A DNA stretch of 64,000 nt from Chlorokybus atmophyticus (GCA_009103225.1 RHPI01003488.1:594110-658109); one strand, 5' to 3'. Positions 3,936-55,978 are shown, counted from the stretch's first letter. Numbers and translations: made by a program. Notes: generated by a model not told the origin, from the sequence alone.

Positions 3936-3945
3936 AAAGGGGGGG
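3936..3945 (+). other. polypurine tract of Gypsy A copy 1
   Basis: AAAGGGGGGG immediately before the TG start of the 3' LTR. Confidence 0.85.
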
Positions 3946-3948
3946 CAT

Positions 3949-27673: not shown

Positions 27674-27731
<58 letters not shown>
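27674..27731 (+). repeat. (CT)n microsatellite
   Basis: Perfect dinucleotide run. Confidence 0.98.
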
Positions 27732-27735
<4 letters not shown>

Positions 27736-34010: not shown

Positions 34011-35117
34011 CAAATTGCAGCTCGAAGCTACTCTCGCAGCTCCCGCAAACAAACCGTGTGTTGCACCATTGGATTGGACGATCAGCAGCGAAAACTCAGA
34101 ATGGTGACTGTCCGAATGCTCACGCAAAAATAACACAACTCTACTATATTTTACTCTACTTTACTCTACTCTCAAGTGCGGTTGACACAACGTGTGCGGC
34201 AGTTAGCACTTGCCGCGTGTCACATATGGCTAAAAGGTGACATCTGAAGTTTCATTTTGAATTTTCAATGTCCAATGCTGCAAATGTTTTTTGGCATACC
34301 TTATGCCCAATGCTGCATTGCCAAGTAGGTTAAGTTACTTTATAAGCACATCCGAACATCCGCCTACTTTGACACGGTGGTGGCGGCGGTGGTGGTAGTT
34401 TTGCTGAATAAATATCGACCCCCCTATACCCATGCGCACCATGAATGAGGCTCTAACGCACGCTCCTCGCAATCGGGCGGCGATGAGTGGGACTAGGTCA
34501 CGTTTTGACACAACCGTGGAACGGCTATGTGGACTCTGACGATGCTCGCTATCATCAGGTACCTTTCTCTCTATACATGGTGTGAGTTGCATGCGCTATG
34601 TCACTCTGCATGCTGCTGACTATGCATGCCACCATGCATGTGCCACACTGTTGCGCATTGTTTGTACATCACCGGTAATTTTGAGACCCTTAAATTTATG
34701 AAAATTCATGGCAAACGCACTGAATATTCTTTTGATTTACCGTTTCAGCTTTTTATCGAGTGATATTCAAGTGTTTTCGTACATTCTGTACAATCCCTGC
34801 CAAAACGAAATCGCGACATTCACCTATGAATCGCGTGAATATCCACACGATAAATCAATGCCACCTTTCAAAACCCATATACCTCGTGTATTCAGTTGAA
34901 ATCGATTGAATGTTCAAGGGCATGCAGTTGTGAATGGACACAGCATGTGCTCTGCTAAATATTCAGCTATACATTGCCTGAACATTCATGAAGGGGCATA
35001 AGCTTGTGGCTATAACAGACAGCTTAAACTCACCAAGTCCCAACTGCCTGTGAATAACCAATTGATCAGCTTGTCACACATGTATATTCCTAACCTTCAT
35101 CAGTTTCATGCCACAGA

Positions 35118-35320
35118 TGTGAGTGAACATTCAACACCAATCTAAAACTACGCAATACGATTCACACTAAGTCCTAGCTTGAAGTGAATTTGCAACACCA
35201 TTCCAAAACCAAGCAATACGTTTTGCACTAACTCCTAGCTGTGAGTGAATATTCAACCCCACACGAATAAACATATACTCTCATTTTGGCCAAGTCCCGA
35301 ATGTGATTGAAAATCAAGTA
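35118..35320 (+). repeat. 61-bp degenerate tandem repeat x3-4
   Basis: Units start at 35118, 35179, 35240 and 35302 (TGTGAGTGAA..T.CAACACCA..C.AAAAC.A.GCAATACG...CACTAA.TCCTAGC). Confidence 0.85.
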
Positions 35321-35466
35321 GATCGCACTGCTAATTCTAATATACAGTCTAGTATATGTCAAAGCCAGAGTTGCTCAGCAATTCTACACAGCTGGTTTGA
35401 GTTAATGGTGGGGGACAGCTCTGATATGGATTACAGCATTGCTATGCTACACACCACCTGCTACTA

Positions 35467-36780
35467 CTAGCTCAACTCATGTCTTTGCTGTGATAACATA
35501 CTGTCCATGAGTGTTCGCAATCGTCTTCTCAACCTGTCTGCCACTTGAGGATGAAACCAACTCCTTTGCATCTGCACACAACCACACAGCAATAACATGT
35601 AATTACTAAGCACGTGTCGGCCTACACGACAGTGCCATTGAAGCACCTTCCACTTGTAAACATTGCAGTGCACATGCATGAATTGTACCTGTTGAAATAT
35701 CCGTGCGTTTGGGTCAATTGGACCAGCTTGTACCCCGTCTATAAACTTGTCAAGATAAAGCATGACAAACAACCCGCACGCAACTCCATCCTTCTGCTGA
35801 GGGACCTGCACAAACATGTGTCAATGCTTGCAAACCAAATGCATGTGCATGCATCCAATCAGTGCTTGTGACAGAATGCATGCAAACTCAACACTAGTGC
35901 AATGCAACGTGTGCTACCTGTGGTACAAGAAGCTGTACATTTTCGGGAGAGAAGCGTCGTTGTGAGTCACTTCCATGCTTTCTGCCCCACATGCAGTCAA
36001 GGTAAGCGCGCATAGGTCCATCAACGTTGCGATGCAGGCCAAGGGAGTCGAGATGGACGAGTAAAGGCGGCGTGTCACTTCCAAGTTGGCCTTCACGATT
36101 GCACACAAGCAGCAGACTCCTATGAGTCCAGTGTACACAATCAAAATAATTCCAGTTTGCAAATACAGCAGCAATTTAGCAAGATAATCTTGGCGCTTAT
36201 TCTCACCGCGTGTCTGGGTTGACAATCACTCCCAGCAAGTCCTTGGCAAACGGATCACTCTCCCACCTGTCTATCCTGTGATTGCTCGTGTGCCAGTCAT
36301 TTTGTCTATGGCAGCGCACGATCTTGGTGTAGAAATGCGGGTGGAACAGCTTCACCTGAATGCCATCTGCTCTGCCTAAGATTTCCTCTTCCTTGTATCT
36401 GCATGTGCATCCCACGTACATATGAGATACACGAATAACACAGACGCAACAAATCACATACCTGCAAAAGAAGTGGAGGATGGTGTCATTGAGCTCTTGT
36501 CTGCCATCCAGCAACCTCCTGTCCGTTTCAAGCACTGGCACCGCATCACGTGCACTTGCACTAGGGTAAATGAATAGTGGCTGCGGTGTTGACGACTGCG
36601 GGTTGCTGACTGGATCGTCCAGCACCATGATATCATCATCGCTGCCCACGAGGTCCACAACTGCCGCAGCCGTCGTGGGTTGCTGATTACAGCCCTCTTC
36701 GTCTTCATCGTCAACTTCCATCGTGACTGCCTCTGCAGCCATAAATGGTTCAATTGGGCAAGAACCACAACGCAAATCAA
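35467..36780 (-). pseudogene. Ulp1/SENP (C48) SUMO protease domain preceded by tandem SIMs
   Basis: LFIYPS..AVPV..D...L..RQELNDTILHFFCRY, VKLFHPHFYTKI, HW..LLLVCN, LVHLDSLG, VPQQKDGVACGLFVMLY (catalytic Cys). VVDLVGSDDDIMVLDD lies upstream. Confidence 0.88.
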
Positions 36781-36899
36781 CAAGCTCAAGCACACAGCAG
36801 CTTACCATTGTTAGCCTCATCCCCACTCTCTTCAACGTGTTGAACCCCACTCTGCACAGGTTGTGAAACCCTACCGCAACTGCCCGGCAGAGAACGACG

Positions 36900-37310
36900 A
36901 GCAAGGCTCTCCCTTGAGAGCTGCGCTGGAGCACCACCTTCTTCGTACGCAGCGCATCGCGAGCACGTAACTTCAACCATGCTACCCACAGCGTGCCGTC
37001 GACAGAGGCTATTTGGACGTCGCGCAGACTTGAAAAGATGCTTCGTCGCAGTTCTTCACATGGCACCTGTGTTTTAGTTCAGTACAAATGATGATGGTTC
37101 TAGGAGTGAAGTTCCTCACAACGAGATGCCAAGCATTTGCTGCAATGAAGTCCACTTACTCATGCCTTGGGCACTCCCAATATTCATCCTCCACAGGTGG
37201 CATAGAGACACAGTGCGCGTGGTAGCTTTTCCAGCAACCTTCCACATCGCAGCCAGATATGGTGCCCCCATCCTTGCAGACAAAGCAATAGTCTTCATGT
37301 TCCCAATGTT
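36900..37310 (-). pseudogene. NSD-type PHD finger plus C5HCH module
   Basis: HEDYCFVCKDGGTISGCDVEGCWKSYHAHCV....WECPRHE|CHVKNCDEASFQVCAT(fs)PNSLCRRH, matching the Cys/His spacing of the NSD PHD5-C5HCH module. Confidence 0.82.
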
Positions 37311-37399
37311 CCAACGCATCCAGCTCCAGTCTCGGTCTCATCATGTGAACAAAGGTTCAGTGGCCAGGTCTACAGTCTCACAGTAGGGATATGAGGCAT

Positions 37400-39702
37400 C
37401 ACAATCGCAAACAGTACCTCTTGTACTCAAAATGCCAGTCGCGGCGTGTGGTCCATGACACCTCGCTCGAGGCGCTATTGGTTTCGCTTTGGGCACCCTG
37501 CACCAAGTTCACAAGATGGTTGTATGTGATGCCAAAACCCTGGATATATGAGGACATCCAGATTCTAATGGACAACGTTGTTAACTCTCCTCTTACCGAA
37601 GTGTCCCGGTGCATGCCTCGACGCATGAGACTGCGCCTGTCTTTAACAAGCGCTACTGTTACTTTGTTGTCATGGGGATCAATTCCCTCAAACCACTGGC
37701 CCTTGACCTGCCAGCAAGAAGGGATACTCATCAGCCATTTTCATACTACTATTTCAATTTACTATCATCACACCAAGCACACGCCAAAACGATTGCAACA
37801 CAGCCACTTACCAGGTTGCTATCAAGGTAGGTTTGTTCTGCAAAGCGGGGCTTGTCTTTGCTTAGGTTTGCAAATCCTCCACTGTGCTGGACTTGGTTGC
37901 TAATGTACCACCTAGCTCTGAGCAGCTGGTGCTCCCAACCAGCTATCACCACAACATCAAAAGATTGCACCCTGCCATACCAATGATTCTTCTTGGTTGG
38001 GTCATCTGAGTCACGCCCAATGGTAAACACGCCACAGTCCATGGTGCGGAGTTTCTTCTCCATTTCCTCTGCTCTGAACTGACCGATGTCCTTGTAGCGT
38101 GCTTTGAAGTATCGCTTGATGTACTTTGGAAAGATTGGACCGCTCAACAGCTCCATCTCGTGCTTTGTAAGCTCCCTAGCAGGTCCACGCCAATGATGCA
38201 GCTCAATCATATGCTCCATGTCCTTTGCCACGACATGTCTTGGGTTTTGAGCCCTTTCCCTTGCCATCCTGCGTTTGTTCACCTCCCGACTGAACTCTCT
38301 GTGTAGTTGCAACCCATAAATAAATCATACTGTCTGCGCGTTGGACATCACGTACAAAACAGCAACTCCCAAAGCAACTTACTCTCTTAGCAGCCTGTAT
38401 TCATCGTCATTTTCAGCCAACCACCACTCGAGCTCCTGCCTTGTCTTACTATCTTTATCCCCAACCTCAATACGGTGTCTCCGTCCGCAAAGCACATAGT
38501 CGTCATCATCTCGTTGCTTGCCCGATCGCAAACTGATGTCGGAGAAAAGTCGCTTTAAGGTGTCCATGTAAGTGTTTAGCATGAGCTGGATAGAGTATCT
38601 GCAGATGCAACTGGCACTTGAACAAGGCAAACAATGTGGAAAGTTTGCACGTAACTCTCAGTGGGCCCACACAAAACTTGCCTTTTGCAGATGCTTGCTT
38701 CCACATGCTGCCTCGCAAATATCATGCCCTTCACCCACTGCATAAAGCGTTCATGTGCCCACTCCCAGTGGTCACGCGTCGGACCAAGCCACATGCACTG
38801 CTCTGGTAGATGGCCAAGGAGGTGCAGCATCATTGTGAGAGAAGTGCGCGGGAAGAACAGCTCCACTTCAGACTGTGCCTCATGCACCAGCACTTGCACT
38901 AAGTAATAAGCTATGCATGCCATAGGAGCTGGGCATGCAGAGTAAAGTGTTATTGAAGCCAACCATCAATTCTTCGAGGTGAAACTGCTTTACTTCCAAT
39001 GCAATCAGCCGTTGATAGATGTCGCATAGTTTGAAGATGGTTCTCTTCTGATCTTCTCCAATGTCGTGTGCAGAGCGCAGCACGTACTGAAAAACGACTG
39101 ACCATAAGTTGTGCTTGTCGTGCGATTTCATCGAGCCTGCATGTTCCATGTCAAAAGTTCCATGCATGGAGAATCATTGCTTTAGTGTAAACACAAAACA
39201 TTTAACGGCTATCTGCAACGGCGTGCCTGTGTCAACATGTTCAGTAGCGTCGTTCCCAACTAGCAATTGTTTGGTGTCATGGAGAGCTTCACCTGGGGCA
39301 AGCCAGATCAATGATCAGACAGCCTGTTGTATAGATTCACAGCTGTAGAGAAGTTGCTCTTGTACCTGACGACATGTGTAAGGATGCAGCAGCAACAGCA
39401 GCATCAGCTTCTTCAAGTTCATGGGGTTGTAGTCAATTACGGTATTCAGGAGCAACAGCTTTTGGAGTGCCACACCACATGTTTTTGCCAAAGTTTTCAT
39501 GATATTCAACCCTTCTAATGTGGTTGTGTGTGAACACTTTGCTCCCTTTGCAGTCGCGGCAAAAACACCTGCGAAAGTAGCTCATGCTACAAACATCAAA
39601 AGCAGTCAGCCAACATACTGCAAGCAACTTCCAATCAACTTCCATACAGCCAAAGCAAAGACCTGCAGGCACGCTGACCCCGCCCGCCGTCGCCGTCGTC
39701 AT
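37400..39702 (-). pseudogene. CACTA TnpD-like transposase, with the N-terminal DD part apparently deleted
   Basis: N-terminal CFCRDC cluster, GSMKSHDKH, DUF4218-like FFPRTSLTMMLHLLGHLPEQCMWLGPTRDHWEWAHERFMQWVK, and DUF4216-like WYGRVQSF..LLRARWY and VKGQWFEGIDP. In-frame TGA near 39175. Confidence 0.85.
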
Positions 39703-39867
39703 GACTGCCTACCGTAAATTAGGGTTTAGGAACCATCCAATCCCGATTCAAAACAAGCCGGAAAGTCAATCCGGATATGCTCCACAATTTGCGTGCGTGC
39801 TCCTTTTCTTCTTCCGTCCAGTGCATTAGCTTTCTAAGGTTTGTATGCCAGGTAGCGTGGCGCCAGC

Positions 39868-41529
39868 ATGCGCGGCGTCAAAGTGTGTAGCTTCTGCAAA
39901 GCATACTTGGTTATGAATGGCAACAACAGACGTCTGCAACAGCATGAAGAGAAGTGCAAGCTGTACAGTGAGCAGTATCGCTTCTATGAAGCCAGCTGGC
40001 ACCACAAGGCCAGGGGAGACAATGTGAGGCAATGCAGACTGCTAGCAAAATGCATGAGGCCAGATTTTTTTGGGAGGAGTGCACTTGCCTGGATTGCTCG
40101 CTCTCCAAGTTCGAGTGGGACGGCGAGCCTATGGATCACCTGCCTTGGGCTCGGCCTAGAGCATATCGAGATGGGCAGGTGTGCAATGTGGTTCGACGTC
40201 AGCTCACACGCAATGGCCGCGGCAAGTCCACTACTGCCCAAGATGATCATGACCACAGAGTGAGTTCAACTGTCCTTGCAAGCAGCAAAACAGTGCTCGC
40301 ATACATGAACAACTCACTTCTGATAGATGGTAGGGAAACACAGTTGTCGACGCCGTCAACGACGTCGCGACACTGGCTGCTTGGCGAAAGGAGATCATTT
40401 ATGGGGGGCAGACTTTGGTGGCAAGTCATGTTGTGGTGTACTGGCTTGGAATGAGCACCTGGTATTCAGGCCGCATCATCAATTTTGATGCAAATACAGG
40501 TATACAGGTAATCATATACTTCAGAGTATGCAATGTACATATGTGTACTCATTTAAGCACTTGCCGTGGCATAGGAAAACATACCATCCATTACGACGAT
40601 TACAATGAGGATCCACGGCTGCACCACATCTTGATCAAAAAGTGGAACATCGCGGCGTTTCAAAGCAGAGCCTTGTTCCGGACATGCAGGTAGTGATGGT
40701 TCGCGTTGGGGGTCAATCCTGCCTGAAACTTCAGGACTTGCCTGGGAGAGAGCTCAATCCTTGGCCCAAGCCGCTGCCACTTCTTTTAACGCGAACTCCA
40801 TGCGACCTAAGCGGCAGACGTTACAGGCCTCGTGCACTGGACCTTTTTTGCGGCGCGGGTGGAGTAGCAATGGGCCTGTACAGAGCAGGTTTTGATGTTG
40901 AGGGCATAGACAACAAGCCTCAACCATCATACCCATTCAAGTTCAGTCAGCTGGATGCACTAGACGCCGACCTGTCCCCATACCATGCATTATGGGCGAG
41001 TCCTCCATGTCAAGCGCTCAGTGGTGCCATCCCTTCTTGTTAACGAGCCATTTTTGGAGATCGCTGGGATCACGTCAACCTAATTGCACTCATGAGAACA
41101 AGATTGCAGTTGAGCGGCAAGCCATGGGTCATAGAGAACGTAGCATGGGCATCTACGCACATGACTGCACACCTCAAGCTATGCGGCAGCATGTTCAACC
41201 TTAACGTTTATCGGCATCGCATTTTTTAGATGAACTCCCCGCTGCGCTCAGACTTGAGATGCAACCACGCTGACTCTGCCCTTGGAGAGCTGTCCACCCA
41301 CCCGGAACAGCGCAGGCAATTGCAACCTGGAGAGAGGCAGATCTACCCGGTGTATGGCCAGGCATCTTGTCGTGGCACGGTTGCACGATGGCAGTCAGCA
41401 ATGCAGGTTGAATGGATGGAAGAAGAACATGAAATAAGACATGCAATTCCACCTGCTTACTCTGAGCATGTAGGACGACTGCTGCTAGAGGCCATGGGCT
41501 TCATAGTGGACTATGCACCATTCTACTGA
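39868..41529 (+). pseudogene. Zn-finger / Tudor / phage-type C5 cytosine DNA methyltransferase gene
   Basis: CSFC..QHEEKC; spliced Tudor-like VVVYWLGMSTWYSGRIINFDANTG|KHTIHYDD. MTase motifs [47 protein letters not shown] and X WMEE..IRHAIPPAYSEHVG lie in one frame with TAA 41041-41043 and TAG 41227-41229. Confidence 0.9.
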
Positions 41530-41599
41530 GATGGTCAGAGTGTAGTCATGATGACTTACAGCACACTTGTTGGTATGACGAACAGACAAAGTGTTGTTT

Positions 41600-44500
41600 G
41601 TCAATGCCAAGATGCACAGGCACCGCAACAGTATATGTCAATAACAGCAATGCCAACAATGATGTGCCTGGTGCAAAGTGTATATTCAAACCTGCAAGGC
41701 GTGTAGTGCTTCACTGCTGCTGCTGCTGCTTCTGCTGCTTCTGCTTCTGCTCTTGCCGCTGCTTTCGCTGCTCCTTCTCCTTCTGACAGTGCTCTCATTT
41801 CTTCCACCGCTCCTCCTCCCGCTGCTCGAACAGCTGCTGCTTCAGCTCCTTCTGCTGCTCAGGTGTCGGCTGCTCGGCGATCAATTCCCGCTCGCGCTCA
41901 TGGTGAAATTTCATGGCCAGCTTCCTGCTCTGCCTTCGGCCTGCGGTGCGCTCCAGCCAATCCAGTTTCTGCATGTTATGACGAGATATTTTGCCTTGCG
42001 CAAAGGTATTGCAATCGAGCTTGCCTGCATCCTGGATATCACGCAGGGAATTTTCGAAGTGTTGGGCTTAAAGCACGAGGTGGGTGAACTGATCACCCCG
42101 CCAATCTCGGTTGCAAGGACCCTTTCGGACCCCAATGAACACCTCCTTTCGAAGTCCCTTGAGAAACAGCTCTACTTTAAGAGCCTCAGGCATCTTTGCA
42201 ACACTGCACAACGATTCAAACTCCTTGTGAAACTCTTGCACTGTGCGAGTGCCCTGCTGCAGCTGATGCAGTTTCTCAACAGCGCTGGCAGGCGTGGTGG
42301 CCATTTGTGGAGCGTGCAAAAATTTACAGCGATCGCCAAACAAGCACTTGCCACGCGCAAAGTAACTGCATGTCTGCTCTTTCTCGACAGCGTGTGATTT
42401 GCAGCGATTGCCGAACCAGCACTTGCCCCGTGCAAAGTGGCTGCATGTCTACTCTTGGCCGCTTGTTGGCGTCGACTTTTGTTTTTTGGTGGCGGGTGCT
42501 GGAGCAATGCTGTCGGAACTGTCGGAACTAATGGGAGGAACATCCCCAGCAGCCTCAGCCTCCTCATCAACCTGCAAAGCATCATGCTTAGTTCCACGTG
42601 GACTATGCGCAGACATGTGGACCATGTTCATCCGTACATCCGGAGTACTAGTACCTGCTTGCCCCTGGCAGTAGCATCCTGCCTGGCCTTGGCTTCAGCA
42701 GCCTCCTACCTAGCTTTATCATCAGCTGCCTTGGTCTCTGCCTCCTGCCTGGCCTTGGCTTCAGCAGCTTCCTGCTTGGCTTTTGCCTTGGCATCATCTT
42801 CCTGCTTGGCCCTGTGCTCGGCCTCCTGCTTTGCCTTGGCTGCAGGGTCCTCGGCATCAGCTTTCTGCTTGGCCTCCGCCTCGGCTTCCTGCTTGGCCTG
42901 GCCCTCAGCTTCCTGCACAGGGGTCTACTGCAAGACGAGGGCGTATGGAGAGGCGCAGAGTCTGCACTGGGCGCTGATGTCGGCAAACCATTGGGGTAAA
43001 GGAAATGGCTGATTTCTGATGGCATGTCACCAAACTCCCAGGAGAGCTTGCCACTGTGATCACCAATGGACAAGTAATGCGCCTCCTTCGAGCCCGGACT
43101 CGTATTGCCAATGATCACATGACCGACCGGGTCATCAACATCCTCGCCAAGCAGCATGACCGGTTTCACATACTTCCGTTCTTGTCTACCTTCTTTGTTG
43201 GTGGTTGTTTGAAAGTAGCTCCCATCTGCACCCTCGAAGAGTCCGCTCAATTTTTCCACGTTCAAGCAGTACCTGCCAGCTGCATCTGCAATAATCTGCG
43301 ATGTGCCGATGCGACGAGCGTTTGCGCCATCAAAGCCAAGTGCAGTTCATCTGCATAAACAGTCTCGTAAGCAATCATCTTGGATAGAGCAATAACGCCT
43401 TTGTCATCATCGTTCTTGATATGCTCCTCCAAATGCAATCTTGCAGCACACTGCTCGTAGTCCTTGCCCATGTCTGAAGCCAGGTAGTTGCGAAACTCCT
43501 TCAACCAAGCAAGGTTGACCTGCTTGGCACACAACTTGCGCAGCTTGACTGCTTGCACTGCGAGTGGCAGCTCTCGTCCTTTGTTCAGCACAATGCTGCG
43601 CCAGAAATCCTCTTTGTCAAGTGCTTTCTCGCGCTGCAGGCATCCAGCCTTCACGGTGGGGCGCGACTGGGCAATGCAGTAGTAAAAGCAATTCCCATCA
43701 CCATAGGCATCAAACACACGCAGGCCTTTCTCCTTCAACAACCCACCCAGCCTTCTCTCAGCACCCGTTTGTTCAGCAGGCAGACCAGACTCCCAAATGT
43801 GAGTGCGCGAGGTTGAAGGGCCAGCTTCAGGTTTGTCGACGAAGTCCCCCAGGTCTATGCCGCCAGCTGCTGCCTTCTTATCACATTGAGTGAGCTCCTT
43901 CACCAGGAATTTGTATAACTCCATCTTTGAATCATCATCGAGCGCGCAGTAGTCCATGCTGTTCTGCAGAGCTACTTTGATGTCGAGCACCATGTTGTCC
44001 CATGAGATTTCGTCGCGCTTCTTGGTCCGTCCGGCACTTTTCCACTGTCTTAATAACGCTTTGTAATAAGCTTTTGCTTTAGCCACAACGTTTTCGTTGG
44101 ACTGGGTTGCCTCAAGCTTCTCAGGCTGCTCTGGTGTTTTCATCTTCTTCTCTGTTGAGAATGGGCATACATGTTGAGCACCAGTATGAGCAAGCATGTG
44201 ATTCATGAGAAGTATGAGATTGGAGCTGAGAAGTTAAAACATCACAAAGTTACCTGCAGGCAGCTGGTCTCCAATACGAACCAGTTTGCGCTTGGCAGGC
44301 ATGATGAACAACCTGGTAAGCCACTAAGCAAAACAACGAGCACAAAGAGGAACACAGACAAGAGGCCTTAACGCACGAGGCCTTAAGCACGAGGCCGCCC
44401 CTGTGCACCAACCAGCACAAGTATTCATTCGTCGGACTGGGTTGCCTCAAGCTTTTCAAGCTGCTCTGGAGTTTTCAGCAAAACAACAAGCACAAAGAGG

Positions 44501-45040
44501 AACACAGACAAGAGGCCTTAACGCACGAGGCCGCTCCTGTGCACTAACCAGCACAAGCATTCATGCAACCACAAACAAGAGGCCTTAAGCACGAGGCCGC
44601 CCCTGTGCACCAACCAGCACAAGCATTCATGCAACCACAAACAAGAGGCCTTAACGCACGAGGCCACCCCGGTGCACCAACCAGCACAAGCATTCATGAA
44701 ACCACAAACAAGAGGCCTTAAGCACGAGGCTGCCCCTGTGCACAAACAAGCATTCTTGCAACCACAAACACGAGGCCTTAAGCACGAGGCTGCCCCTGTG
44801 CACAAACAAGCATTCTTGCAACCACAAACACGAGGCCTTAAGCACGAGGCCGCCCCTATGCACAAACAAGCATTCATGCAAATGGAGACAAGCACGGAGT
44901 TTTCTGCACCTTGTTGCACATTTGTCAGAACCCTGGAGCAAGCCGCCGCACTGCAAGACTGCTCCACGCCGCGAATTGCGCACCCAATAACAAAGATGCA
45001 AGTACTTAAGCAAGCACAGCGCCAGCCCACGACACCAACC
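41600..45040 (-). pseudogene. OTU deubiquitinase - charged repeat - 2x CCCH zinc finger - retro-gag-like domain protein; 5' end ill-defined
   Basis: GLRVFDAYGDGNCFYYCIAQS and EAHYLSI (OTU Cys and His), KAKQEA/KARQEA repeats, CSHFARGKCWFGNRCKSH and CSYFA.GKCLFGDRCKFLH, AVEKLHQLQQGTRTVQEFHKEFESLCSVAKMPEALKVELFLKGL. Frameshifts and a TAG are present. Confidence 0.78.
44340..44880 (+). repeat. 60-67 bp minisatellite, ~7 units
   Basis: Unit AAACAAGAGGCCTTAAGCACGAGGC(C/T)GCCCCTGTGCAC(CAACCAG)CACAAGCATTCATGCAACCAC. Confidence 0.93.
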
Positions 45041-45310
45041 CAACTCCGCCGCCCACGTCGCTCACAACCGTACGTAACTCCACAACCCTAAGCAAAGTCA
45101 TGGACTTAGGGTTTTGGAGTTACAGCAGCCATTTCATGCAGATTTTAGGCAAGGTCGGCGGCGGCGGCGCCGGCGCAGGCAAGGTCATCGTCGTCGGCGG
45201 CGGCGGCGATGCTGGAGTGCTAGCGGTTACACAGCAGATATGTGCATGCCGTGCTTCCTTGCGCATGCCATGCATGTGTGTGTGTGTGTGTGCATGCTGT
45301 GCGTGCTGTG

Positions 45311-45520
45311 TTTGCTGCAAGCCGCTGGGGCAGCCTTGTGCATAACCCCTCAGTGGCCTTGCCTGTGCTGCAGCAAAAAGGTGTTGGCTGCAAGCCGCTG
45401 GGGCAGCCTTGTGCATAACCCCTCAGTGGCCTTGCCTGTGCTGCAGCAAAAAGGTGTTTGCTGCAAGCCGCTGGGGCAGCCTTGTGCATAACCCCTCAGT
45501 GGCCTTGCGGCAAAAAGGTG
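45311..45520 (+). repeat. 73-bp tandem repeat x~2.8
   Basis: GCTGCAAGCCGCTGGGGCAGCCTTGTGCATAACCCCTCAGTGGCCTTG recurs at 45314, 45387 and 45460. Confidence 0.93.
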
Positions 45521-46199
45521 TTCTTTCTGTGTGTGCTTGCGCTAGCATTGTGTCTCTAAAAAGTTATTTCCCTGCTCTATTTCTGACTCTACTGTTGGTT
45601 AACTACGGTGTGTGATCCACAGGTAAACAACTACCATTCAGCAATGGGCGGTCGCTTTAGGTCCAGTGTAGTTGATCGTCGAACATGAGGTAGGTATTTG
45701 GTCTTGACTCAGATGCTTGCATGCATTCAACAGAGGGTATGATGATCCAGCCGGCTGCTTCCAAGGCAGCAGGTAAACCAGAGCTCGCATGCCAGGCATG
45801 GTGTGTTTGTGGATGAGACTCAGATCAGAGTATTTGGCTCTGTGTTTTGGGTGTCTTGGCATTCTTACAGCTGCTATCAACAGGTTGAGCATTGCCTGCA
45901 GCATGTTTGCAGGACACCGCCAGTAACGGTGCCCAAGAAGTTGGCAAGAGCTCCAGCGACTACAGGGACAGATACATGCATCCTTGCATGCGTATCACAT
46001 GAATGTGCATGTGTGTGTATGGTGTCCAGTCAGCTGGGGCAGTTGATTGCAAGCCCTCATGTGTGTGTATGCGCGCGTGTGTCGCAAAAGTCCGTGTTCA
46101 CTTCTTCTGCTGCGCAAACATACCTTGTATTTGTGCATATGCGAGTGCAGTTGTGAGGGTTTTTTTTAAAAGCATGTTTGGGCAATTCTACTGCCAGTG

Positions 46200-47626
46200 T
46201 GTTACGAACGCGGAGGGGAAATCACACCAAAAACTATGTACAGTGATCACACACTTTTACATGTAGTGACTGTACACTCCCTTAATCACCTTTCGTTGAA
46301 TGAACAACTACTTGGTAACTTAAGGGTTATGGTCACCTAGCTTAGGTACCCCTACCTTAGTCCCAAAAGCCCAGAGCTCAAGTCGCGCGGCGGCTACCCT
46401 CCACCCGCGACTGGCTCTTTTGTTTTGGCGAACTCTATCGCCGTGAGCTTTACTAGGAACTATCTTGGCTAAGACCTACTTGGTCCAAAGCCCTCTACCA
46501 GATCCCCCATTCACTCACCCAAATGATTAGTTTAATTCACCCGGCATTAGTTCACTGGCATTCTGCAAAGTGACCGACAATATGAATCCGCGATTTTTGT
46601 GCCTGCGGCCATGGTAGGCGGCGCTGCCATAGCGCTGCGTATTGGCACACGCGGGAGGGGGCCAATGCCTTAGCCGATTTTCTATCGCGACGTCGCGTCG
46701 CGAAGTGATCTAATAGTTGATTCACTAGTGAATCAACCTTAGTTCACTACCTTATCGGCATTGTGAATCACTCTACTAGTGAACTAACTTAGTTCACCAG
46801 TGATTCACTTTTTGCTCTCTCTTCTATTAGGGTGATTCACTTAGTTCACTTACGAACCCCTAGTAAACTACTACTTTAGTTGATGTTCGTAACTGAACCA
46901 GTGAACTAATTAAATTCACTATGTTGATTCACTTCTCAGGTGAATCAACCCCTTCGCGAACTCATTTCGCGAAGTCCTTTTTGTTCACCCTAATACTTAT
47001 TCGAGGATTAATACTTACGAAGTGTCTTCCTACCTTAGGCCGGTGGGGGGGCGTGCCCCCGCGTTTCCACTCGCGGTTGCGTCCCCCACTTATTCGTGTG
47101 GCGGACTTAGCGATTTCGCAAAGTCCGCATTCATTCGGCGATGGGGTATTTAACCCTATTTTAGGCTTTTCGCTAATTCATTAATTAGCGAACCTAGGTA
47201 GGCTACTTCGCTCTAGTCAACTGATCCAAATAAGCCGCCTTGGATTGGCCTAAATGAACCTTATAGTTACACATGCTTTTTCCTATGATGTTTCGCGCAA
47301 TTGACCCCATAAGCCCACATCACGTTAATAAATCATTATACTAAAGCCATGTGCTTTGATCTTCCTACTCAAGACGCCCATACATACATGAATAGGGTAA
47401 TTCCTAGTCAACCACTGCGAATTAGATGCATTAAATGCTCTAACTAGCCAGGCCTATAATTAGCGATGCATAGCACTCGTGTTAAAGCTCAAACACAAAC
47501 ACACGCGTTCAAAGCTTGCATAACAAACCAAGATAATCCAACCAAGGTTTATTAAACTTCTGTCTCTCGCTAATTAAACTTATATATACACTGTACATGG
47601 CCAGCTATAGTAGCTAGGCCGTAACA
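46200..47626 (-). repeat. 3' LTR of Gypsy A copy 2 (1427 bp, includes ~200-bp extra segment)
   Basis: TGTTACG...CGTAACA termini; adjacent to the PPT. Confidence 0.95.
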
Positions 47627-47785
47627 ATGCCCCCCCTTTAGTTATTGAGCGTCTCTGCTCAATTTCTTTCTTCACGCTTTCCAACCTAGGAAAACAAGCC
47701 ATAATCAGTAACTTGATAGGTCAAAACGTGGAACTACTTCTAAAGGCGGGAAATATATAATTTCAGAAATGGACCTACCTGGACT

Positions 47786-50700
47786 TCATCTTTGGGCAAC
47801 CGTTAGCTCCCTCCAATATTTCTTTATCAGAAGCGGCGATCGCATGTTAGGCTCGTCAAACCCATTCACATGCCTCGAACGGATGGCCCTTCCATTTCAC
47901 AAAGAAACTGGGAGATCTGCCTTTCCGGCCTTTGTGGGTTACTATACCCTCAACTTCATACTCCCAATCTTCTTCCTTTAAACATTGGGGGGGGGGGGGG
48001 GGGGGGGGGCACCGCCNTGAGTAATAGGTGCTCAATAGCGAGGCATGAAATACATTATGTATTTTAAGACTCGGTGGCAATTCTAACTTGAATGCCACAG
48101 CCCCTATCTATTCTATTACCTTAAATGGTCCAAGCCATCGGGGTAATAGTTTTCGGGCCCCGTCGAGAGACTCCATCCTCACATTCTTCGTGCTAAGTAG
48201 GACTTCTTGTCCCACTTCAAACACGGCCTCTGCCCTGTTGGCATCGGCATATTGGCGCATACGATTTTGGGTTGCTAATAAGGCCCTCTTGGCCTCATTT
48301 TGCACCTGCCCTAATCGTTGAGCCAAAATTTGAGTCGAGGGGTTGACTCTTTTCCTAGCCCCCATATTCTCCATTAAAGCCTCAACCGGACTTAATGGAT
48401 GGCGGCCATAGCCAATATAAAATGGTGTCATCCCCGTTGACTCATTCACTAAATCATTGATGGCATACTCAACGAAAGCGAGATATGTATCCCAATCTCT
48501 AATATTCTTTAGTGAGTAATGCCTCAATAGTTGTTCCACTGCCTGATTCACACGCTCGGTTTGCCCATCTGTTTGAGAATGAAACGCGGTGGATAACTTA
48601 TCATCCAAATTTAATGTATCACATAATTCACGCCAAAAAGCGGAAGTGAACCGCGAACCCCTATCCGAAATCATATTCACGGGCATCCCATGTTGTGAAT
48701 ACCATCTCCTAAAAAAGGCATGGGCAAAATCCTCGCCCGTAAATTTTGGAGGAGTTGGTTCTAAGTGAACAACTTTACTAAACCGGTCTACAAATACAAC
48801 CATTCCATTATTCCCTTTTACCGTTTTAGGTAATTGGACTATAAAGTCAACTGACATTGACTTCCAAGCCCCCTGTGGTATGGGTAAAGGTTGTAATTTC
48901 CCGGCCGGTTTTGTCCTTACGGATTTATTCCTTTGGCATGAGTCACAATTCTTCACAAAGTTTTCAACATCAATTCTTAAGGTCGGCGACCAATACCTCC
49001 TAGCCAAAGACTCGGTAGTTTTTCCTTATACCAAAATGGCCACGGTAAGGGGGATTATGTGATTCTTCAATCACCTTTGACCTAAGTGACCCGTCCATTG
49101 GAACCGCAATTTTTCCATCATCTTTATACCAAAATGCCCCATGTGGTTTTAACACTTGGTTGAATTCCAAAAGGAACTCCGGGCAATTAGTATAACTTGC
49201 GATTATTTGGTTAGGAATGTCACTCACATAATCCAATGCAAGTAATGCCAAATCCTCGGACAATGCGGGATGCCTACTTAAAGGATCTGCCGCATTTATC
49301 CTACCTGGCCTATATTCCCAATCAAAATCATATCGCACTAAATACTCATACCACCTTACTTGGCGTCGCGACAAATTAGGTTGCGTATTTATGTGTACTA
49401 AGGGGTTGTGATCAGTTATCACCTTAAAATGCCTCCCCTTTAAGTAACACCTCCATCTATGCAACGCTTTCACAACACCTAATAATTCTTGATCGGTGGT
49501 CGAGTAATTCTTCTCCGCGGGCTTATACTTGAAACTCTCAAAGGCTATTGGATGCCCCTCTTGCACTAGTATAGCCCCGGTGCCTGCCAAAGAGGCATCA
49601 CTTATTACCTCAAATGGCTTTTCCATTTCCGGCAACTTCGAAACCGGAAGTGAGGTCATAGCAGCCTTATGCCTTTCAAAGGCTTGCTGCTCTTTAGGAC
49701 CCCATCCAAAGGGTTTTCGGGTACTTGTCAAAGTAGTGAGTGGGGCGGCTATAATTGAATAGCCCAAAATAAAACGGCGGAACCATAGGCAAAAACCCAG
49801 AAATTTTTGTAACTCCGTTACATTCTTAGGAACAGCCCAGACTTTAACTCTTTCAAGTTTCTTAGGATCGCCTTTTATTCCATCTTTACTCACAATATTA
49901 CCCAAGTACTCTACTTCCCTAGCAAAGAAGTCACACTTCTCGAAATTCGCCAAGAATTTATGCTCCCTTAGCCTATTCAAGGCTTTTTTAAAATGAAGCA
50001 CATGTTCCTCTTTCGTACTCGAAAATACAATAACATCATCCAAGTACATTAAGACGAATTTCCCTACCTCCTCTTTAAATACTTCATTCATAACCGCTTG
50101 GAATGTGACTGGCGCATTGCACAAGCCAAATGGCATCACCGTATATTCGTAATGACCCATAGGGGTTTCAAACCCTGTCTTATACCCATCTTCTATCGCG
50201 ATAGGTATTTGGTGATAACCACTAGTTAAGTCGAGGATGCTAAACCACGACTTCCCAACTAGTTAATCATACACATCATCCAAACGCGGTAAGGGGAAGG
50301 CATTTATCATCGTTTGTGCATTTGATGACCTATAATCAACACACATTCGGAGCTTGCCTCCCTTCTTTTCGGCAACAATTATATTAGCCGAATAGGGGCT
50401 TTGCGATTCAACTATCAAACCCCTTTCTAGGAGATAGTTCACCTGCTTCTTTGCTTCATCACGTTCCTTAGAACTTAGCCTATACAATGGCCTTAACGGC
50501 GGAGGCCCAGCCCCTTTCTTTAGTGGGATTAAATGGGAGACAAATCTGTTTGCCGGTGCACTTAGTAGATCCGCGGAGAATATATCCATAAACTCCCTTA
50601 CCACCGGGTGTACCTTTTCCAATCAATTTCACTTGACTCTTCCAAGTCCCCCACTATACTTAGGCAACCTACAGCCAATTCGAAGTCACCCTTTAACCAT

Positions 50701-51541
50701 TAATCAACTGGGTCGATGGTGGGTTTACTCCTTCTGTTAGGCTTACGGTTCCTACTAGGTGTCAAAGCAAACGCTTGTCACCTTGTGTGATTGTAGTAGA
50801 AGGTGGCACGCTTGTTAATTCTAAGTTTACGTGCTTTTGCCAACTATCACCCAATATCACATCTATGCCTGGAATAAGGGACTTGACCACATATAGCTTT
50901 ATTTTGGCCCTATAATCCCCCATTCGAATTAGCAACCCTGACACGCCACTTACTTCACAATGTAACTCACCTACTAGGCTTGCCCTAGCATTGGTAGTTT
51001 CTATGGTGGCCAAGACCCTTTTTGCCAATGCGGCACTTACAAAATTTTCTAAGGCACCAGTGTCCACTAAGACACCACATGCCCTATCATTCACTAATGC
51101 ATCGAAGACCATACTTAGCCTAGGATTTATTTGTGAATCTCGGCGATCACTTGCATCATCACACCACATTTGCAAGTCAGTGGCAAAAGGTGATTTGGCC
51201 CTTGGTAATGTGCCCATACGGCGCATACCGCCTAACAACCTTTTCCACTTACCATAATATTTAGGTGTTAGAACACACGCCTTAATTTCGGGGTTAGTTT
51301 GCTTTGATTGCCAATGATTTGTCAAAGTATGTGTTAACTCACGAAGTGGCACGCATATGAGAATTCGCTCATGCCCTACCTCAAGTGAATTAATTCTTGG
51401 CAAATCTTCAAACTCATTCCCAAAACAAACATCGCATTTCATAGGCAACATCATCGTTGTAGCTATACAACTGTTGTTCTCAAGTCGCCCACTACTTTGC
51501 TCCTCTGGCGCCGTTCCTATACAAGCAACCACCCCACACCG
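47786..51541 (-). pseudogene. pol: pol of Gypsy A copy 2
   Basis: ORF pieces 50762-51532, 50263-50622, 49000-50160, 48108-49007 and 47856-48098 with protease, RT, RNase H, integrase and chromodomain motifs; several frameshifts and stops. Confidence 0.93.
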
Positions 51542-52806
51542 TCACTTGGCGGGATCCTCGGTCGGCTTTGCTCCTTTCTTCGGGCACTTGGAGGCCATAT
51601 GCCCCTTTTCGCCACAATTGAAGCATAAACCTTCGCGAGTTCTTCTCTCCTTCTCTTCACTGGAGAGTCTTGCCTTGCCCTGGAAGGCTGGCTTAACGGG
51701 TTTCTTGCCAAACGGCTTTTTACCCTTTTTCTTTTAAGGGGTCTTTCAAGACTTCTCCTTTTCAACCGGATTTTCCATCTCCGATTGGGGGGCAAGTCCT
51801 TTTCTTTTCTTTCCCTTTCCTCCCCCGGATTTGTCTCCACCCTCTTCCCTATCCCTTTTGTTAATGTTAGCCAAATTCCGGCCGACCCATCTTGCCGTGT
51901 TCTCAAGCTCCGTGAACTTCTCCTGAGTCCACTTCATATCAATCTTTTGCAACCGCATAATATCTGGTTGCTTTTGGAGCTTAGAATCCAAGGCTCGAAT
52001 GAATAGGTTGGCCTTCTCAATCTGGCTTAATGGCCTTCCCCCATTTGCAGCCTGAGCCGCTAACAGGTTGAATTGGCTCACAAATTCCGTGATCAATTTG
52101 CCCGATTGTTTCAAGTCGGATAGCTTATCCCTGGCATCAAGCCCGGGGTCCACTGTCCTATATTGGCTAAACAAAAACTCCTTTAGGGATTCAAAGGTGG
52201 GCTCAACCAAATGAGACCTATGGTCCTTCCACAACTGAAGTGGTTCTGGACCTAAGTATCCCGCGGCAAAACCCAACCTTTGCCTTTCCGGAACCGTAGC
52301 CAAAGTCATTTCGACTTGGTTCCACCAAGCGTCTATATCCTCCCCTTTTTTGCCAGTCCATGCCGGGGGAATTTTTAGAAACTTGGTACTTGGTCCTATT
52401 TAAACCGAGTCTATTTTGTCCTCGAGTTCTTTCATTTTCTGCTCCCCAAGGACACGGAGGCGCGTGAGCTCCTCCTCATTCTTCTCGAGGTTTTTTACAA
52501 GCCTCAAGATGCCTTGCTTGGCCTTTTTGCCCTCTATGCAACAAGCCAAGGCTATTTTCTTATATTTTGGCGACAACTTGGCTATCCTCCGTTCCATTTT
52601 CCCCCCCTAGTTGGGGTATCGGTGGATTCGAAGCTTCCGCTTGTTCCGCCATTGCCGCGACTAGCCTTTTTTTCTTCGAAATAGGCTTCTATTTCGCGGT
52701 AATCCTCTTCACTGGCGCTACTATTAAAAGTCTCACGCCACTTGTGATAATTTCCAATCCGGCGTTGTTTCGGCATGCACTTCGGAAACGCGAATTTCCG
52801 AATCAA
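51542..52806 (-). pseudogene. gag: gag of Gypsy A copy 2
   Basis: KIPPAWTGKKGEDIDAWWNQVEMTL..., DARDKLSDLKQSGKLITEFVSQF, LFIRAL and a CCHC knuckle at the C-terminus. The N-terminal pieces are joined by a frameshift in a G run and by in-frame stops. Confidence 0.85.
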
Positions 52807-52852
52807 AGTGGTCCCAAACCACGGCCTGAGTGGTTCAAAATGGTATGTTCAA

Positions 52853-52864
52853 GCTCCGAGGCCA
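52853..52864 (-). promoter_or_regulatory. primer binding site, degenerate tRNA-iMet type
   Basis: TGGCCTCGGAGC two nt downstream of the 5' LTR; 9/12 identical to the canonical iMet PBS TGGTATCAGAGC. Confidence 0.6.
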
Positions 52865-52866
52865 GC

Positions 52867-54233
52867 TGTTACGACGCTCGGAGGGGAAATCACACCAAAA
52901 ACTATGTACAGTGATCACACACTTTTACATGTAGTGAATGTACACTCTTTTAATCACCTTTTGTTGAATGAACAATCACTTGGTAACTTAAGGGTTATGG
53001 TCACCTAGCCTAGGTACCCCTACCTTAGTCCCAAAAGCTCAGAGCTCAAGTCGCGCGGCGACTACCCTCCACCCGCGACTGGCTCTTTTGTTTTGGCGAA
53101 CTCTATCGCCGTGAGCTTTACTAGGAACTATCTTGTGTAAGACCTACTTGGTCCAAAGCCCTCTACCAGATCCCCATTCACTCACCCAAGTGAGTAGTTT
53201 AGTTCACCCGGCATTAGTTCACTGGCATTCTGCAAAGTGACCAACAATGTGAATCCGCGATTTTTGTGCATGCGGCCATGGTAGGCGGCGCTGCCATAGC
53301 GCTGCGTATTGGCACACGCGGGAGGGGGCCAATGCCTTAGCCGATTTTCTATCGCGACGTCGCATCGCGAAGTGATATAATAGTTGATTCACTAGTGAAT
53401 CAACCTTAGTTCACTACCTTATCGGCATTGTGAATCACTCTACTAGTGAACTAACTTAGTTCACCAGTGATTCACTTTTTGCTCTCTCTTCTTTTAGTCC
53501 CCTCATATTAGGGTGATTCACTTAGTTCACTTACGAACCCCTGGTGATCTACTTTAGTTCATGTTCGTAACTGAACCAGTAAACTAATTTAATTCACTTA
53601 CGAACCCCCAGTGAACTACTTTAGTTCATGTTCGTAACTGAACCAGTGAACTAATTTAATTCACTTACGAACCCCTAGTGAACTATTTTAGTTCATGTTC
53701 GTAACTCAACCAGTGAACTAAATAAGTTCACTATGTCGATTCACTTCACCTGTACATCAACCTTTTCGCGAACTCATTTCGCGAAGTCCTTTTTGTTCAC
53801 CCTAGGTAGGCTACTTCGCTAGTCAACTGATCCAAATAAGCCGCCTTAGATTGGCCTAAATGAACCTTATGATTACACATGCTTTTTCCTATGATGTTTC
53901 ATGCGATTGACCCCATAAGCCCACATCGCGTTAATAAATCATTATACTTAAGCCATGTGTTTTTATCTTCCTACTCAAGACGCCCATACATACATGAATA
54001 GGGTAATTCCTAGTCTACCACTTATAATTAGATGCATTTTAATGCTCTAACTAGCCAGGCCTATAATTAGCGATGCATTGCACTCGTGTTAAAGCTCAAA
54101 CACAAACACACGCATTCAAAGCTTGTATAACAAACCAAGATAATCCAACCAAGGTTTATTAAACTATTGTCTCTCGCTAATTCAACTTATATATACACTG
54201 TACATGACCAGCTATAGTAGCTAGGCCGTAACA
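52867..54233 (-). repeat. 5' LTR of Gypsy A copy 2 (1367 bp)
   Basis: TGTTACG...CGTAACA termini; adjacent to the PBS. Confidence 0.95.
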
Positions 54234-55895
54234 CATGCGATTACGATACTATCAATTCAACCTTAATCCTTAATTCACGTTAAAGCGAGCAAGTGCGAAA
54301 CACAGTTATCATGACCGGTTGTGCATGATAAGTATTAAAGTTGTTTATAAAATCGCATTGAATAATATGCACATGTGATGTACAATACCTCAATCATTTG
54401 CTATGAACTAGTATAAAATGTTTGGTTACCATACAACATGAGTCTTTTGCTATGACACGGACATTACAGTGAACATAACAATATCGACTGATGAGTACAA
54501 ACCATGTGATCGTACATACCCCTTTGATGTGCTGTTGATAGAATCTGTAATTACTGATGCAAATACTTAATGCTACACACACTTATATACACACAGTTGT
54601 TAACAAATAATTGCATGGTTAATATATGCTAACATGTTTTGTATTAAAAATACACATATAATTGTACGGGTATATTATAGCAAGCTTGTTATGCTATGAT
54701 AAGATGACGGTAACAAAAAGGTTGCGTTGTTGATTAGCATGTGTCCAACAGCATGTACAATTTCATTACATATTCTTTTGTATGATGCATTACGCATCGC
54801 ACTCCGTATGCTTTGATTGTACAATTTATGGGATCGCATCAAGCCAAATGTATTAATGATTTGATGTGTGGATTCCGCTATGTATAGCAATACGCTTGTA
54901 TGTTGCATGCATGCGTTTACATGTTTTGAACGTAATGCAATGTACATTATACTACACTCTCATTTTAATATAATAGTTGATTAGACCTCATTCATAAAGA
55001 AGCACGATTTTTCATTGCATTCAGTCATGTATGATTTTTTTTTTTTTTTTTTTTTCGCGACGCTTTGCTTCACGTGTACCGCGTANNNNNNNNNNNNNNN
55101 NNNNNNNNNNNNNNNNNNNNNNNNNNNNNNNNNNNNNNNNNNNNNNNNNNNNNNNNNNNNNNNNNNNNNNNNNNNNNNNNNNNNNNNNNNNNNNNNNNNN
55201 NNNNNNNNNNNNNNNNNNNCCCCCCCCCCCCCCCCTCCAATCAATGGGGGTGTTGTAATGTTTTTGTTTTTTTATTCGCACAAATACGGTACCGGTATTG
55301 CAGCACACATGTCATCGATTATGGCCGCTTGCTTGTGAATCACAACATGTGATCCCCCGACGTGCCAATTTTGGCGAAGAGGCCGTCTGCGGTTATCGGT
55401 AATCTCGTCTTGCAGCAAACCCTGACTGCGAAGCCTAACGGAGCGAGCAGCTCATTCGCCATACGTGGCATATTTTCGCAGCGGCGGGAGCGGCGGCGGC
55501 GGTGGAGGCGCATTGACTGAGGGCAGGAGAGGGGTGGCGAGAGTGTGTAGTAAGGGAGCGGCAGGAGGGCAGGGCAGAGTAGAGAGGATTAGCAGCAGCA
55601 GGGCACCACGGGGCAGGCGGCCGGCAAGCAGTGCGTGCCACTCAGATTCGGTCCGGCTGGTGGCGCCAAGGCGGGTGAGCAGGCCTCCAGTCCAGCCAAA
55701 GGCGGCCGCCGTCGCGCCGGCGGCGGCGGCGCCGTCGTGCCGGCGGCGGCCAGCGAAGGTGTGTTGCCCGACAAACAGAAAGTCGCTGCGGTCAGCGTCA
55801 AAGTCGTGACGCCGCCAGAGTCTGCACCGAGGAAGCAGGACCAAGCCGGGCGAACGCGACCCCAACCCGATCCCCATCCACCCCGCCACAAGCCT

Positions 55896-55931: not shown

Positions 55932-55978
<47 letters not shown>

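Follow-up and report, generated by a model that had tools for sequence, protein, structure and literature searches.

A cluster of three tightly packed genes at ~35.5-44.2 kb of a stretch of 64,000 nucleotides (nt) of DNA from the streptophyte green alga Chlorokybus (C. atmophyticus, GCA_009103225.1, RHPI01003488.1:594110-658109; this whole stretch is hereinafter the window) probably, if by no means certainly, represents a rearranged and no longer functional copy of a CACTA/EnSpm (CMC)-type DNA-transposon locus with several genes. Established in the window are the domain content, the order of the genes, the multi-copy state of gene 1 together with exon 1 of gene 2, and the lesions. The value of this relic lies in the evidence it provides for the linkage of genes 1 and 2 in several copies. 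The start codons of genes 1 (39702) and 2 (39868) are 165 base pairs (bp) apart in a head-to-head arrangement, and the stop codon of gene 2 (41529) is separated by ~270 bp from the end of gene 3 (~41795), tail-to-tail. An initial annotation of this DNA had described the same packing and the same set of modules, all of which are recovered in place: the identification of the C5 DNA methyltransferase (DNMT), the CCCH/Gag segment, the PHD finger, DUF4218 and Ulp1 is strong, and that of the OTU, Tudor, C5HCH and C2HC modules and the SUMO-interacting motifs (SIMs) is weak or at the motif level.

Domain architecture of the three genes

The genes and their domains are as follows.

35480-39702, minus strand: gene 1, a pseudogene; transposase remnant spliced to PHD-C5HCH, a SIM-like acidic tract and Ulp1 (ATG at 39702, stop at 35480; exons inferred from gene models P0001-P0008)
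38579-38965, minus strand: DUF4218 of a TnpD/CACTA-type transposase (PF13960, E-value 2.7e-9, 37.3 bits, cut-off 27)
37162-37287, minus strand: NSD-type PHD finger (PF22908 PHD_NSD, E-value 1.2e-6, 29.1 bits, cut-off 23.9; zf-HC5HC2H, 27.9 bits)
36985-37155, minus strand: C5HCH-like Cys/His stretch, read by eye, broken by a stop at 37009-37011 and a 2-nt deletion at 37016
36614-36661, minus strand: two SIM-like hydrophobic/acidic motifs (VVDLV.., IMVLDD), motif level only, kept in P0001-P0008
35480-36394, minus strand: Ulp1/C48 protease, exons 36206-36394, 35936-36127, 35686-35802 and 35480-35530
39868-41529, plus strand: gene 2, a pseudogene; C2HC finger, Tudor and C5 DNA methyltransferase (exon 1 39868-40259, exon 2 40334-~40499, exon 3 40574-41529)
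40260-40333 (74 nt) and ~40500-40573, plus strand: introns of gene 2, GT..AG, in phase
40334-40612, plus strand: Tudor-like domain, split by the intron at ~40500-40573 (LBR_tudor, E-value 0.1; PDB 7de9_A, E-value 0.15 over the pattern VxVWW..YxG..xxD; weak)
40819-41526, plus strand: small phage-type C5 cytosine methyltransferase domain, single frame, intronless, two in-frame stops
41795-44206 (approximate), minus strand: gene 3, a pseudogene; OTU-like domain, KA(R)QEA repeat, two CCCH fingers and a Gag-like segment (three-frame reading, frames 0>2>1>0, at least three in-frame stops)
43065-43699, minus strand: OTU-like protease region (Cys loop DGNCFYY at 43679-43699, His loop EAHYLSI at 43065-43085; motif level)
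42140-42445, minus strand: two CCCH fingers and a Retrotrans_gag-like segment (zf-CCCH, 37.5 bits, cut-off 20.5; Retrotrans_gag, 37.7 bits, cut-off 24.1)

Gene 1 belongs to a multi-copy, young repeat family. A search started with the 291-amino-acid (aa) stop-free piece 36206-37078 matched three clusters that comprise eight C. atmophyticus gene models from eight scaffolds (EukProt/JGI ‘Chlat1’); compared to the window exon by exon, these models are identical at 335 of 351 residues (95.4%). They also provide the splice pattern, with a SIM-like acidic exon (36458-36721) followed by the Ulp1 exons. In P0003, the transposase C-terminal exon (37417-37557) is spliced to the PHD exon (37243-37341) and onward to the SIM exon, which supports a transposase-PHD-Ulp1 fusion protein. 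The Ulp1 piece in the window scores 18.1 bits with PF02902, under the cut-off of 20.7, and the homologous gene models do carry PF02902; the positions of the His, Asp, Gln and Cys residues of Ulp1 are present, at THR.., HLDSLG and QQKDGVACG. The C5HCH-like stretch has no Pfam match, and a metagenome scan with the transposase C-terminal piece yielded no match.

DUF4218 is the sole transposase domain remaining in gene 1. Only 737 nt separate it from the ATG, so that the DDE core cannot be present in the window copy.

In gene 2, exon 1, which contains a C2HC-type finger assigned by eye, closes in phase 0 at 40259 (AGA/GTGAGT), and the Tudor exon opens in frame at 40334. The PDB entry matched by the latter, 7de9, is one that we take to be the H3K4me1-binding Tudor domain of Arabidopsis RDM15/PDS5C. 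The methyltransferase domain has 4140 relatives at E-values of 0.001 or lower, with 65-75% identity over the N-terminal 65 residues, and in tblastn it aligns end to end with metagenome relatives of ~200-245 aa (40-46% identity over 217-240 columns). The C5 motifs I (FxGxGG), IV (PPCQ), VI (IENV), VIII and X (AIPPAYSE) are present in this order, with all catalytic motifs kept; the N-terminal methyltransferase piece scores 21.1 bits with PF00145 (cut-off 22). A reading of the methyltransferase pieces as exons joined by introns was rejected, the domain being one frame with two stops. Judging by sequence comparison, the enzyme appears to be of phage ancestry, a small phage-type methyltransferase of ~210 aa; to phage-type C5 enzymes of this size it is 44-46% identical over the full length. 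One homolog, P0012, is encoded among RecT, HNH and N6_N4_Mtase genes on a phage-like contig. This contig (L001:1-12708) resembles a piece of a tailed-phage genome, with RecT, HNH, an N6/N4 methylase and a cell-wall hydrolase.

In gene 3, a frameshift splits the OTU-like domain: the Cys loop is in frame 0 and the His loop in frame 2, followed by the KA(R)QEA repeat in frame 1 and the CCCH fingers and Gag-like segment again in frame 0. The OTU region has no match to PF02338 in Pfam; its best PDB match is a nairovirus OTU (E-value 0.05, weak), and Atlas OTU clusters match at 0.87. An AlphaFold2 model of the OTU piece, built without an alignment, has a pLDDT of 45 and is unusable.

Given that the nearest relatives of the DNMT are viral or prokaryotic in type and that the OTU loop finds its best, albeit weak, PDB match in a viral OTU, both the methyltransferase and the cysteine proteases could be considered as contributions of an integrated large DNA virus, the relic of which was subsequently invaded by transposons. 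This origin is very improbable because the DNMT is fused via spliced exons to a eukaryotic Tudor domain and a zinc finger, the flanks contain no capsid, polymerase or other viral hallmark (Pfam), and the block holds only ~9 kb of genes.

Copy number, linkage and decay

Contigs of two related strains (runs X1 and X2) were aligned to the window at 90% or higher likeness; the assemblies average ~116 nt per contig, and a gap in contig coverage proves nothing about absence. Two features stand out.

34579 (or further left) to 40133: multi-copy block, depth ~28 (X1) and ~37 (X2), covered by contigs of 0.3-2.9 kb with ~98% identity to the window
39139-39214: rearrangement hot spot, with a minimum of 1.2 kb of different sequence in the related-strain contigs and loose ends at 39139 and 39214

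The high-depth contigs cross the divergent spacer into exon 1 of gene 2. As this exon is within the block and its junction with the Tudor exon is in phase, the 5' end of gene 2 belongs to the repeated locus, and gene 2 is one gene that spans the depth boundary. Physical linkage of genes 1 and 2 is therefore a feature of several copies.

Further to the right, over 40140-41539, there are only contigs of 170-250 nt, at a depth of ~2-6 (about 4) and with ~96-99% identity. With ~4x taken as the single-copy depth, a value assumed from contig fragmentation, the left block would represent about 7-10 collapsed copies. The identity to the multi-copy contigs drops from ~98% at 39214-39963 to 92% at 39975-40133, and right of 40133 the matches at 90% or higher are low-depth contigs, one contig of depth 12-18 (40262-40386) and one contig of a diverged paralog. 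At least one such diverged DNMT paralog is present in both strains, on a contig that matches 41104-41153 only. In both related strains, the contig of depth 12-18 continues past 40386 with six other letters and then re-enters at 40262, which shows intron 1 and the beginning of the Tudor exon to be tandemly duplicated in some copies.

At the hot spot, one X1 contig (record 5) extends for 1211 nt to the left of 39214 with sequence that is absent from the window stretch, and the loose-end letters of the related-strain contigs are found nowhere in the window. The contigs of the two strains branch three ways at 39139-39214, which suggests a large insertion or deletion here as a difference between family copies. 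The additional sequence of at least 1.2 kb in the related strains is probably the missing DDE core, which seems to have been deleted from the window copy.

The depth data also bear on the possibility that a CACTA element inserted next to present or former cellular (host or domesticated) genes, namely Tudor-DNMT and OTU-CCCH-Gag. Coverage of the DNMT and OTU parts by the related strains is roughly single-copy, with ~99% identity, like an orthologous locus, and the Tudor domain resembles the plant type. Nevertheless, this explanation is improbable: the two genes are pseudogenized in the window, the DNMT, which has no intron, is of the phage type and not of the DNMT1, DNMT3 or CMT type, the Gag-like piece points to a mobile-element origin, and exon 1 of gene 2 is multi-copy.

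All three genes are broken by frameshifts and in-frame stops, as follows (deletions are called relative to the related-strain contigs).

Gene 1: 8-nt deletion at 39683; break at 39139/39214; 2-nt deletion at 37016; stop at 37009-37011; W>R beside the catalytic His of Ulp1
Gene 2: 1-nt deletions at 40064 and 40660; stops at 41041 and 41227
Gene 3: frame changes 0>2>1>0; stops at ~42708, 42451 and 42070

At the C5HCH-like stretch, the related-strain contigs have G at 37011 and two additional letters after 37016. In gene 2, where they do not have the deletions at 40064 and 40660, they hold the zinc finger, Tudor and DNMT in a single frame. The observed/expected ratio of CpG is 0.58-0.69, uniformly over 28-46.2 kb, versus 0.80-0.85 in the host and LTR (long terminal repeat)-element DNA. 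The decay of the genes pointed out in the initial annotation is confirmed in all three by the lesions. In the comparison of the window with the multi-copy contigs over 35540-40133, the window has A against G 30-31 times and T against C 23-24 times, with the reverse changes seen 9-11 times each; this excess of G>A and C>T in the window copy fits a silenced, long-methylated relic. Because every gene is broken, the window copy cannot act on chromatin and does nothing now, so that the manipulation of its own chromatin that had been proposed for the element is not something this copy could perform.

Uniform CpG depletion over the block is counted here as a sign of shared history of the genes, and it is relevant to a further alternative under which independent relics have piled up, i.e., a truncated CACTA-type element (gene 1) came by chance to lie beside unrelated decayed genes or transposon fragments (Tudor-DNMT and OTU-Gag) in a repeat island into which an LTR retrotransposon had inserted as well. 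The island, at ~28-55 kb between host genes, does contain a nested LTR element, the high-depth repeated block ends near 40133, no common terminal inverted repeats (TIRs) or target site duplication (TSD) were found, and the OTU piece has no annotated paralog. Chance accumulation is nonetheless rather unlikely in view of the uniform depletion, the very tight spacing of the genes (165 bp head-to-head and ~270 bp tail-to-tail) and the inclusion in the repeated block of gene 2 exon 1, with its in-phase splice to the Tudor exon.

Termini and the proposed mobile unit

Several observations weigh against the assignment of the cluster to a CACTA/EnSpm-type locus. First, TIRs and TSDs were sought by four types of search, including CAC[TA][AG] ends, any 9-mer inverted pair and blastn-short, allowing a left terminus within 24-36 kb and a right terminus within either 43.5-46.2 kb or 53.8-64 kb, and only (CA)n/(TG)n microsatellites were detected; no TIR pair with a matching flanking duplication of 2-3 bp was found in this search space. 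Second, no Transposase_21 or DDE core (C(2)C/H(3-4)H motifs) is detectable by Pfam in any stop-free piece. Third, at 90% or higher likeness, contigs of the two related strains cover the Tudor-DNMT region at roughly single-copy depth and not as a multi-copy sequence, so that the other copies either do not have the Tudor-DNMT part or carry a version that is more than 10% diverged; the dependence of the copy estimate on an assumed single-copy depth counts on the same side. Fourth, the related-strain contigs are unspliced, and accordingly both runs, including X2 as the single candidate for RNA, behave as DNA and give no support for expression or splicing. Finally, the assignments of the Tudor domain (plant PDS5/MSH6-like) and of the OTU domain, both made from sequence, are weak, and the 323-aa OTU piece has no relative in a word-indexed search of 5.8 billion clusters, nor among 1.84 billion representative proteins in a collection that includes C. 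atmophyticus.

With regard to class membership, DUF4218 and repetition are found, and the DDE core, CAC.. TIRs and a TSD are not; among the accessory functions, the NSD-type PHD finger, the C5 methyltransferase motifs and Ulp1 are all identified, and the C5 methyltransferase has no intact open reading frame. Repetition in the genome is seen for gene 1 and exon 1 of gene 2 only. Joint repetition of the Tudor-DNMT and OTU parts with the transposase is not seen in the related-strain contigs, and, judging by word shares, X2 appears to contain the OTU region at a low share of the kind expected for an orthologous locus. In the absence of a TIR or a 3-bp TSD, one giant element has no defined ends here; a right terminus could have been masked by the LTR insertion or could fall into the N gap at 55086-55219. 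The initial view of a single giant CACTA-like element is therefore borne out in part, by the multi-copy state of gene 1, its linkage to gene 2 exon 1 and the uniform CpG depletion; the lack of TIRs and of a 3-bp TSD, the near single-copy depth of Tudor-DNMT and the OTU piece without relatives do not support it. Position 46199, where that element had been thought to end, was rejected as a transposon terminus: 46200 is the first LTR base, so that this is the insertion point of the LTR retrotransposon.

Under the favored reading of a CACTA/EnSpm-type locus, the product of an intact gene 1 would be a transposase that runs, by splicing, into an NSD-type PHD-C5HCH region, SIM-like motifs and a SUMO-type Ulp1 protease. 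Gene 2, divergent from the 165-bp spacer, would encode a zinc finger, a Tudor reader and the small methyltransferase of phage ancestry as one protein, and gene 3, convergent with gene 2, would encode an OTU-like protease, a helical repeat, two CCCH fingers and a Gag-like piece. The three genes are predicted to form one mobile unit, the accessory proteins of which, in intact copies, might act on the element's own chromatin, with Tudor guiding cytosine methylation and the two proteases stripping SUMO- or ubiquitin-type marks and thereby tuning silencing or transposition. In its complete form, this proposal is tentative and on balance doubtful: intact family members would be single mobile units whose genes together make up a self-contained chromatin-editing system, in which a Tudor-guided, phage-derived C5 methyltransferase writes 5-methylcytosine (5mC) on or around the element, and the transposase-linked PHD-Ulp1 and the OTU-CCCH-Gag protein remove the SUMO or ubiquitin marks of host silencing. 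If true, this would be the first known DNA transposon with its own cytosine-methylation writer-reader fusion and a testable case of reader-guided self-methylation.

Related mobile elements and the genomic setting

Enzymes of the silencing machinery that are encoded on mobile elements show how the chromatin arms race is fought. Among the closest parallels are the giant Plavaka (EnSpm/CACTA) transposons of red algae, described in a preprint on Bostrychia moritziana, which span 17-19 kb and carry the accessory genes PAG1-3; in these EnSpm/Plavaka elements, an N6-methylase-SET gene and a ParB-2OG oxygenase gene form a mobile cassette that is common to different transposon families (doi 10.1101/2025.02.11.637652). 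As in the Chlorokybus locus, several accessory genes with DNA- or histone-modifying products lie beside a transposase of the EnSpm superfamily, tandem repeats adjoin an accessory gene, and most Plavaka copies are degenerate. The modules themselves differ, with N6-adenine methylase plus SET and ParB plus 2OG oxygenase in Plavaka, compared to Tudor plus C5 methyltransferase, OTU-CCCH-Gag and a PHD-Ulp1 transposase tail in Chlorokybus. Moreover, the host is a streptophyte alga, and the window transposase, which has no core, can be likened to the red algal elements at the EnSpm level only.

Fungal KDZ, Plavaka and other DNA transposons encode TET/JBP dioxygenases, for which an anti-silencing role has been proposed (PMC12730594). 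These also combine a cut-and-paste transposon of the wider EnSpm/CMCT group with an enzyme that acts on cytosine methylation, but the fungal enzyme is a 5mC eraser or oxidizer encoded by a single accessory gene, whereas in Chlorokybus a 5mC writer is fused to a reader, with two protease-bearing genes alongside. C5 DNMTs are encoded by retrotransposons of the dinoflagellate Symbiodinium and the charophyte Klebsormidium, where self-methylation has been proposed, and DNMT-encoding DNA transposons have been noted in marine viruses (PMC5890265). The similarity to these retrotransposons is that a mobile element carries a C5 methyltransferase, in one case in a charophyte alga; however, those are LINE, DIRS and other elements with eukaryotic Dnmt3-type enzymes, in contrast to a ~210-aa phage-type enzyme in a DNA-transposon locus.

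Ubiquitin and SUMO pathways have been proposed to act in transposition, and proteases of the respective families are known from Ginger1 transposases with C-terminal Ulp1, OTU or PHD domains, from Mutator-like elements (Ulp1) and from Helitrons (OTU) (PMC2836005). Gene 1 resembles the Ginger1 fusions of a transposase to Ulp1 with a PHD finger, and OTU proteases likewise occur in DNA transposons. Unlike the Chlorokybus locus, however, the Ginger, Mutator and Helitron elements belong to other superfamilies, with one protease per element and no DNA methyltransferase. Finally, Sola1-1_Ec32 of Ectocarpus has an accessory ParB-DNA methyltransferase gene (PMC12477816) and is thus comparable as a giant algal DNA transposon with an accessory gene on the strand opposite to the transposase, in which a targeting domain is fused to a prokaryote-type DNA methyltransferase. 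Its methylase differs from that of gene 2 in being of the N4C/N6A type and ParB-targeted, in an element of the Sola1 superfamily.

The gene combination in the Chlorokybus cluster is unusual: a full-text literature search found no paper that reports a Tudor-C5-DNMT gene or the three-gene set in a CACTA-type element or in Chlorokybus. The suggestion that this combination had not been described agrees with this result as far as the gene set goes, and the concept has precedents in EnSpm/Plavaka, KDZ and Sola1 elements of red and brown algae and fungi with DNA- or histone-modifying accessory genes. If the proposal is correct, a Tudor-C5-DNMT together with two proteases of ubiquitin-like proteins in a cut-and-paste element of an early-branching streptophyte would extend the known list to the plant lineage.

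The window, which contains seven N runs, is of eukaryotic origin, and its protein matches point to Chlorokybus. The cluster is located inside a GC-poorer repeat island (~28-55 kb) with host genes on both sides, e.g., a kinase-like gene starting at ~56075. Within the window, there is no second copy of the cluster, and the flanks at 28-34.6 kb and 44.2-46.2 kb contain no Pfam domains. The other repeats of the island are the following.

44327-44881: tandem array of 60/67/133-nt units, upstream of gene 3
45308-45526: tandem array of three 73-nt units with 98-99% identity, upstream of gene 3
46200-54238, minus strand: Ty3/gypsy-type LTR retrotransposon in an LTR-internal-LTR-internal (partial) arrangement, with reverse transcriptase, RNase H and integrase identified by Pfam

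The two arrays could be subterminal or protein-binding repeats. The ends of the 73-nt unit are partly palindromic (TTTGCTGCA..TGCAGCAAA). The LTRs of the retrotransposon (46200-46992 and 52867-53804) are 94% identical, and the segment past the second LTR, 53805-54238, is a repeat of 47197-47630, which is why the element is read as LTR-internal-LTR-internal over 46200-54238. An inverted further copy of the same LTR-retrotransposon family is found at about 3945-5414. An identical (CT)n microsatellite is present at both outer edges of the island, at 27674-27733 and 55935-55978, probably by coincidence.

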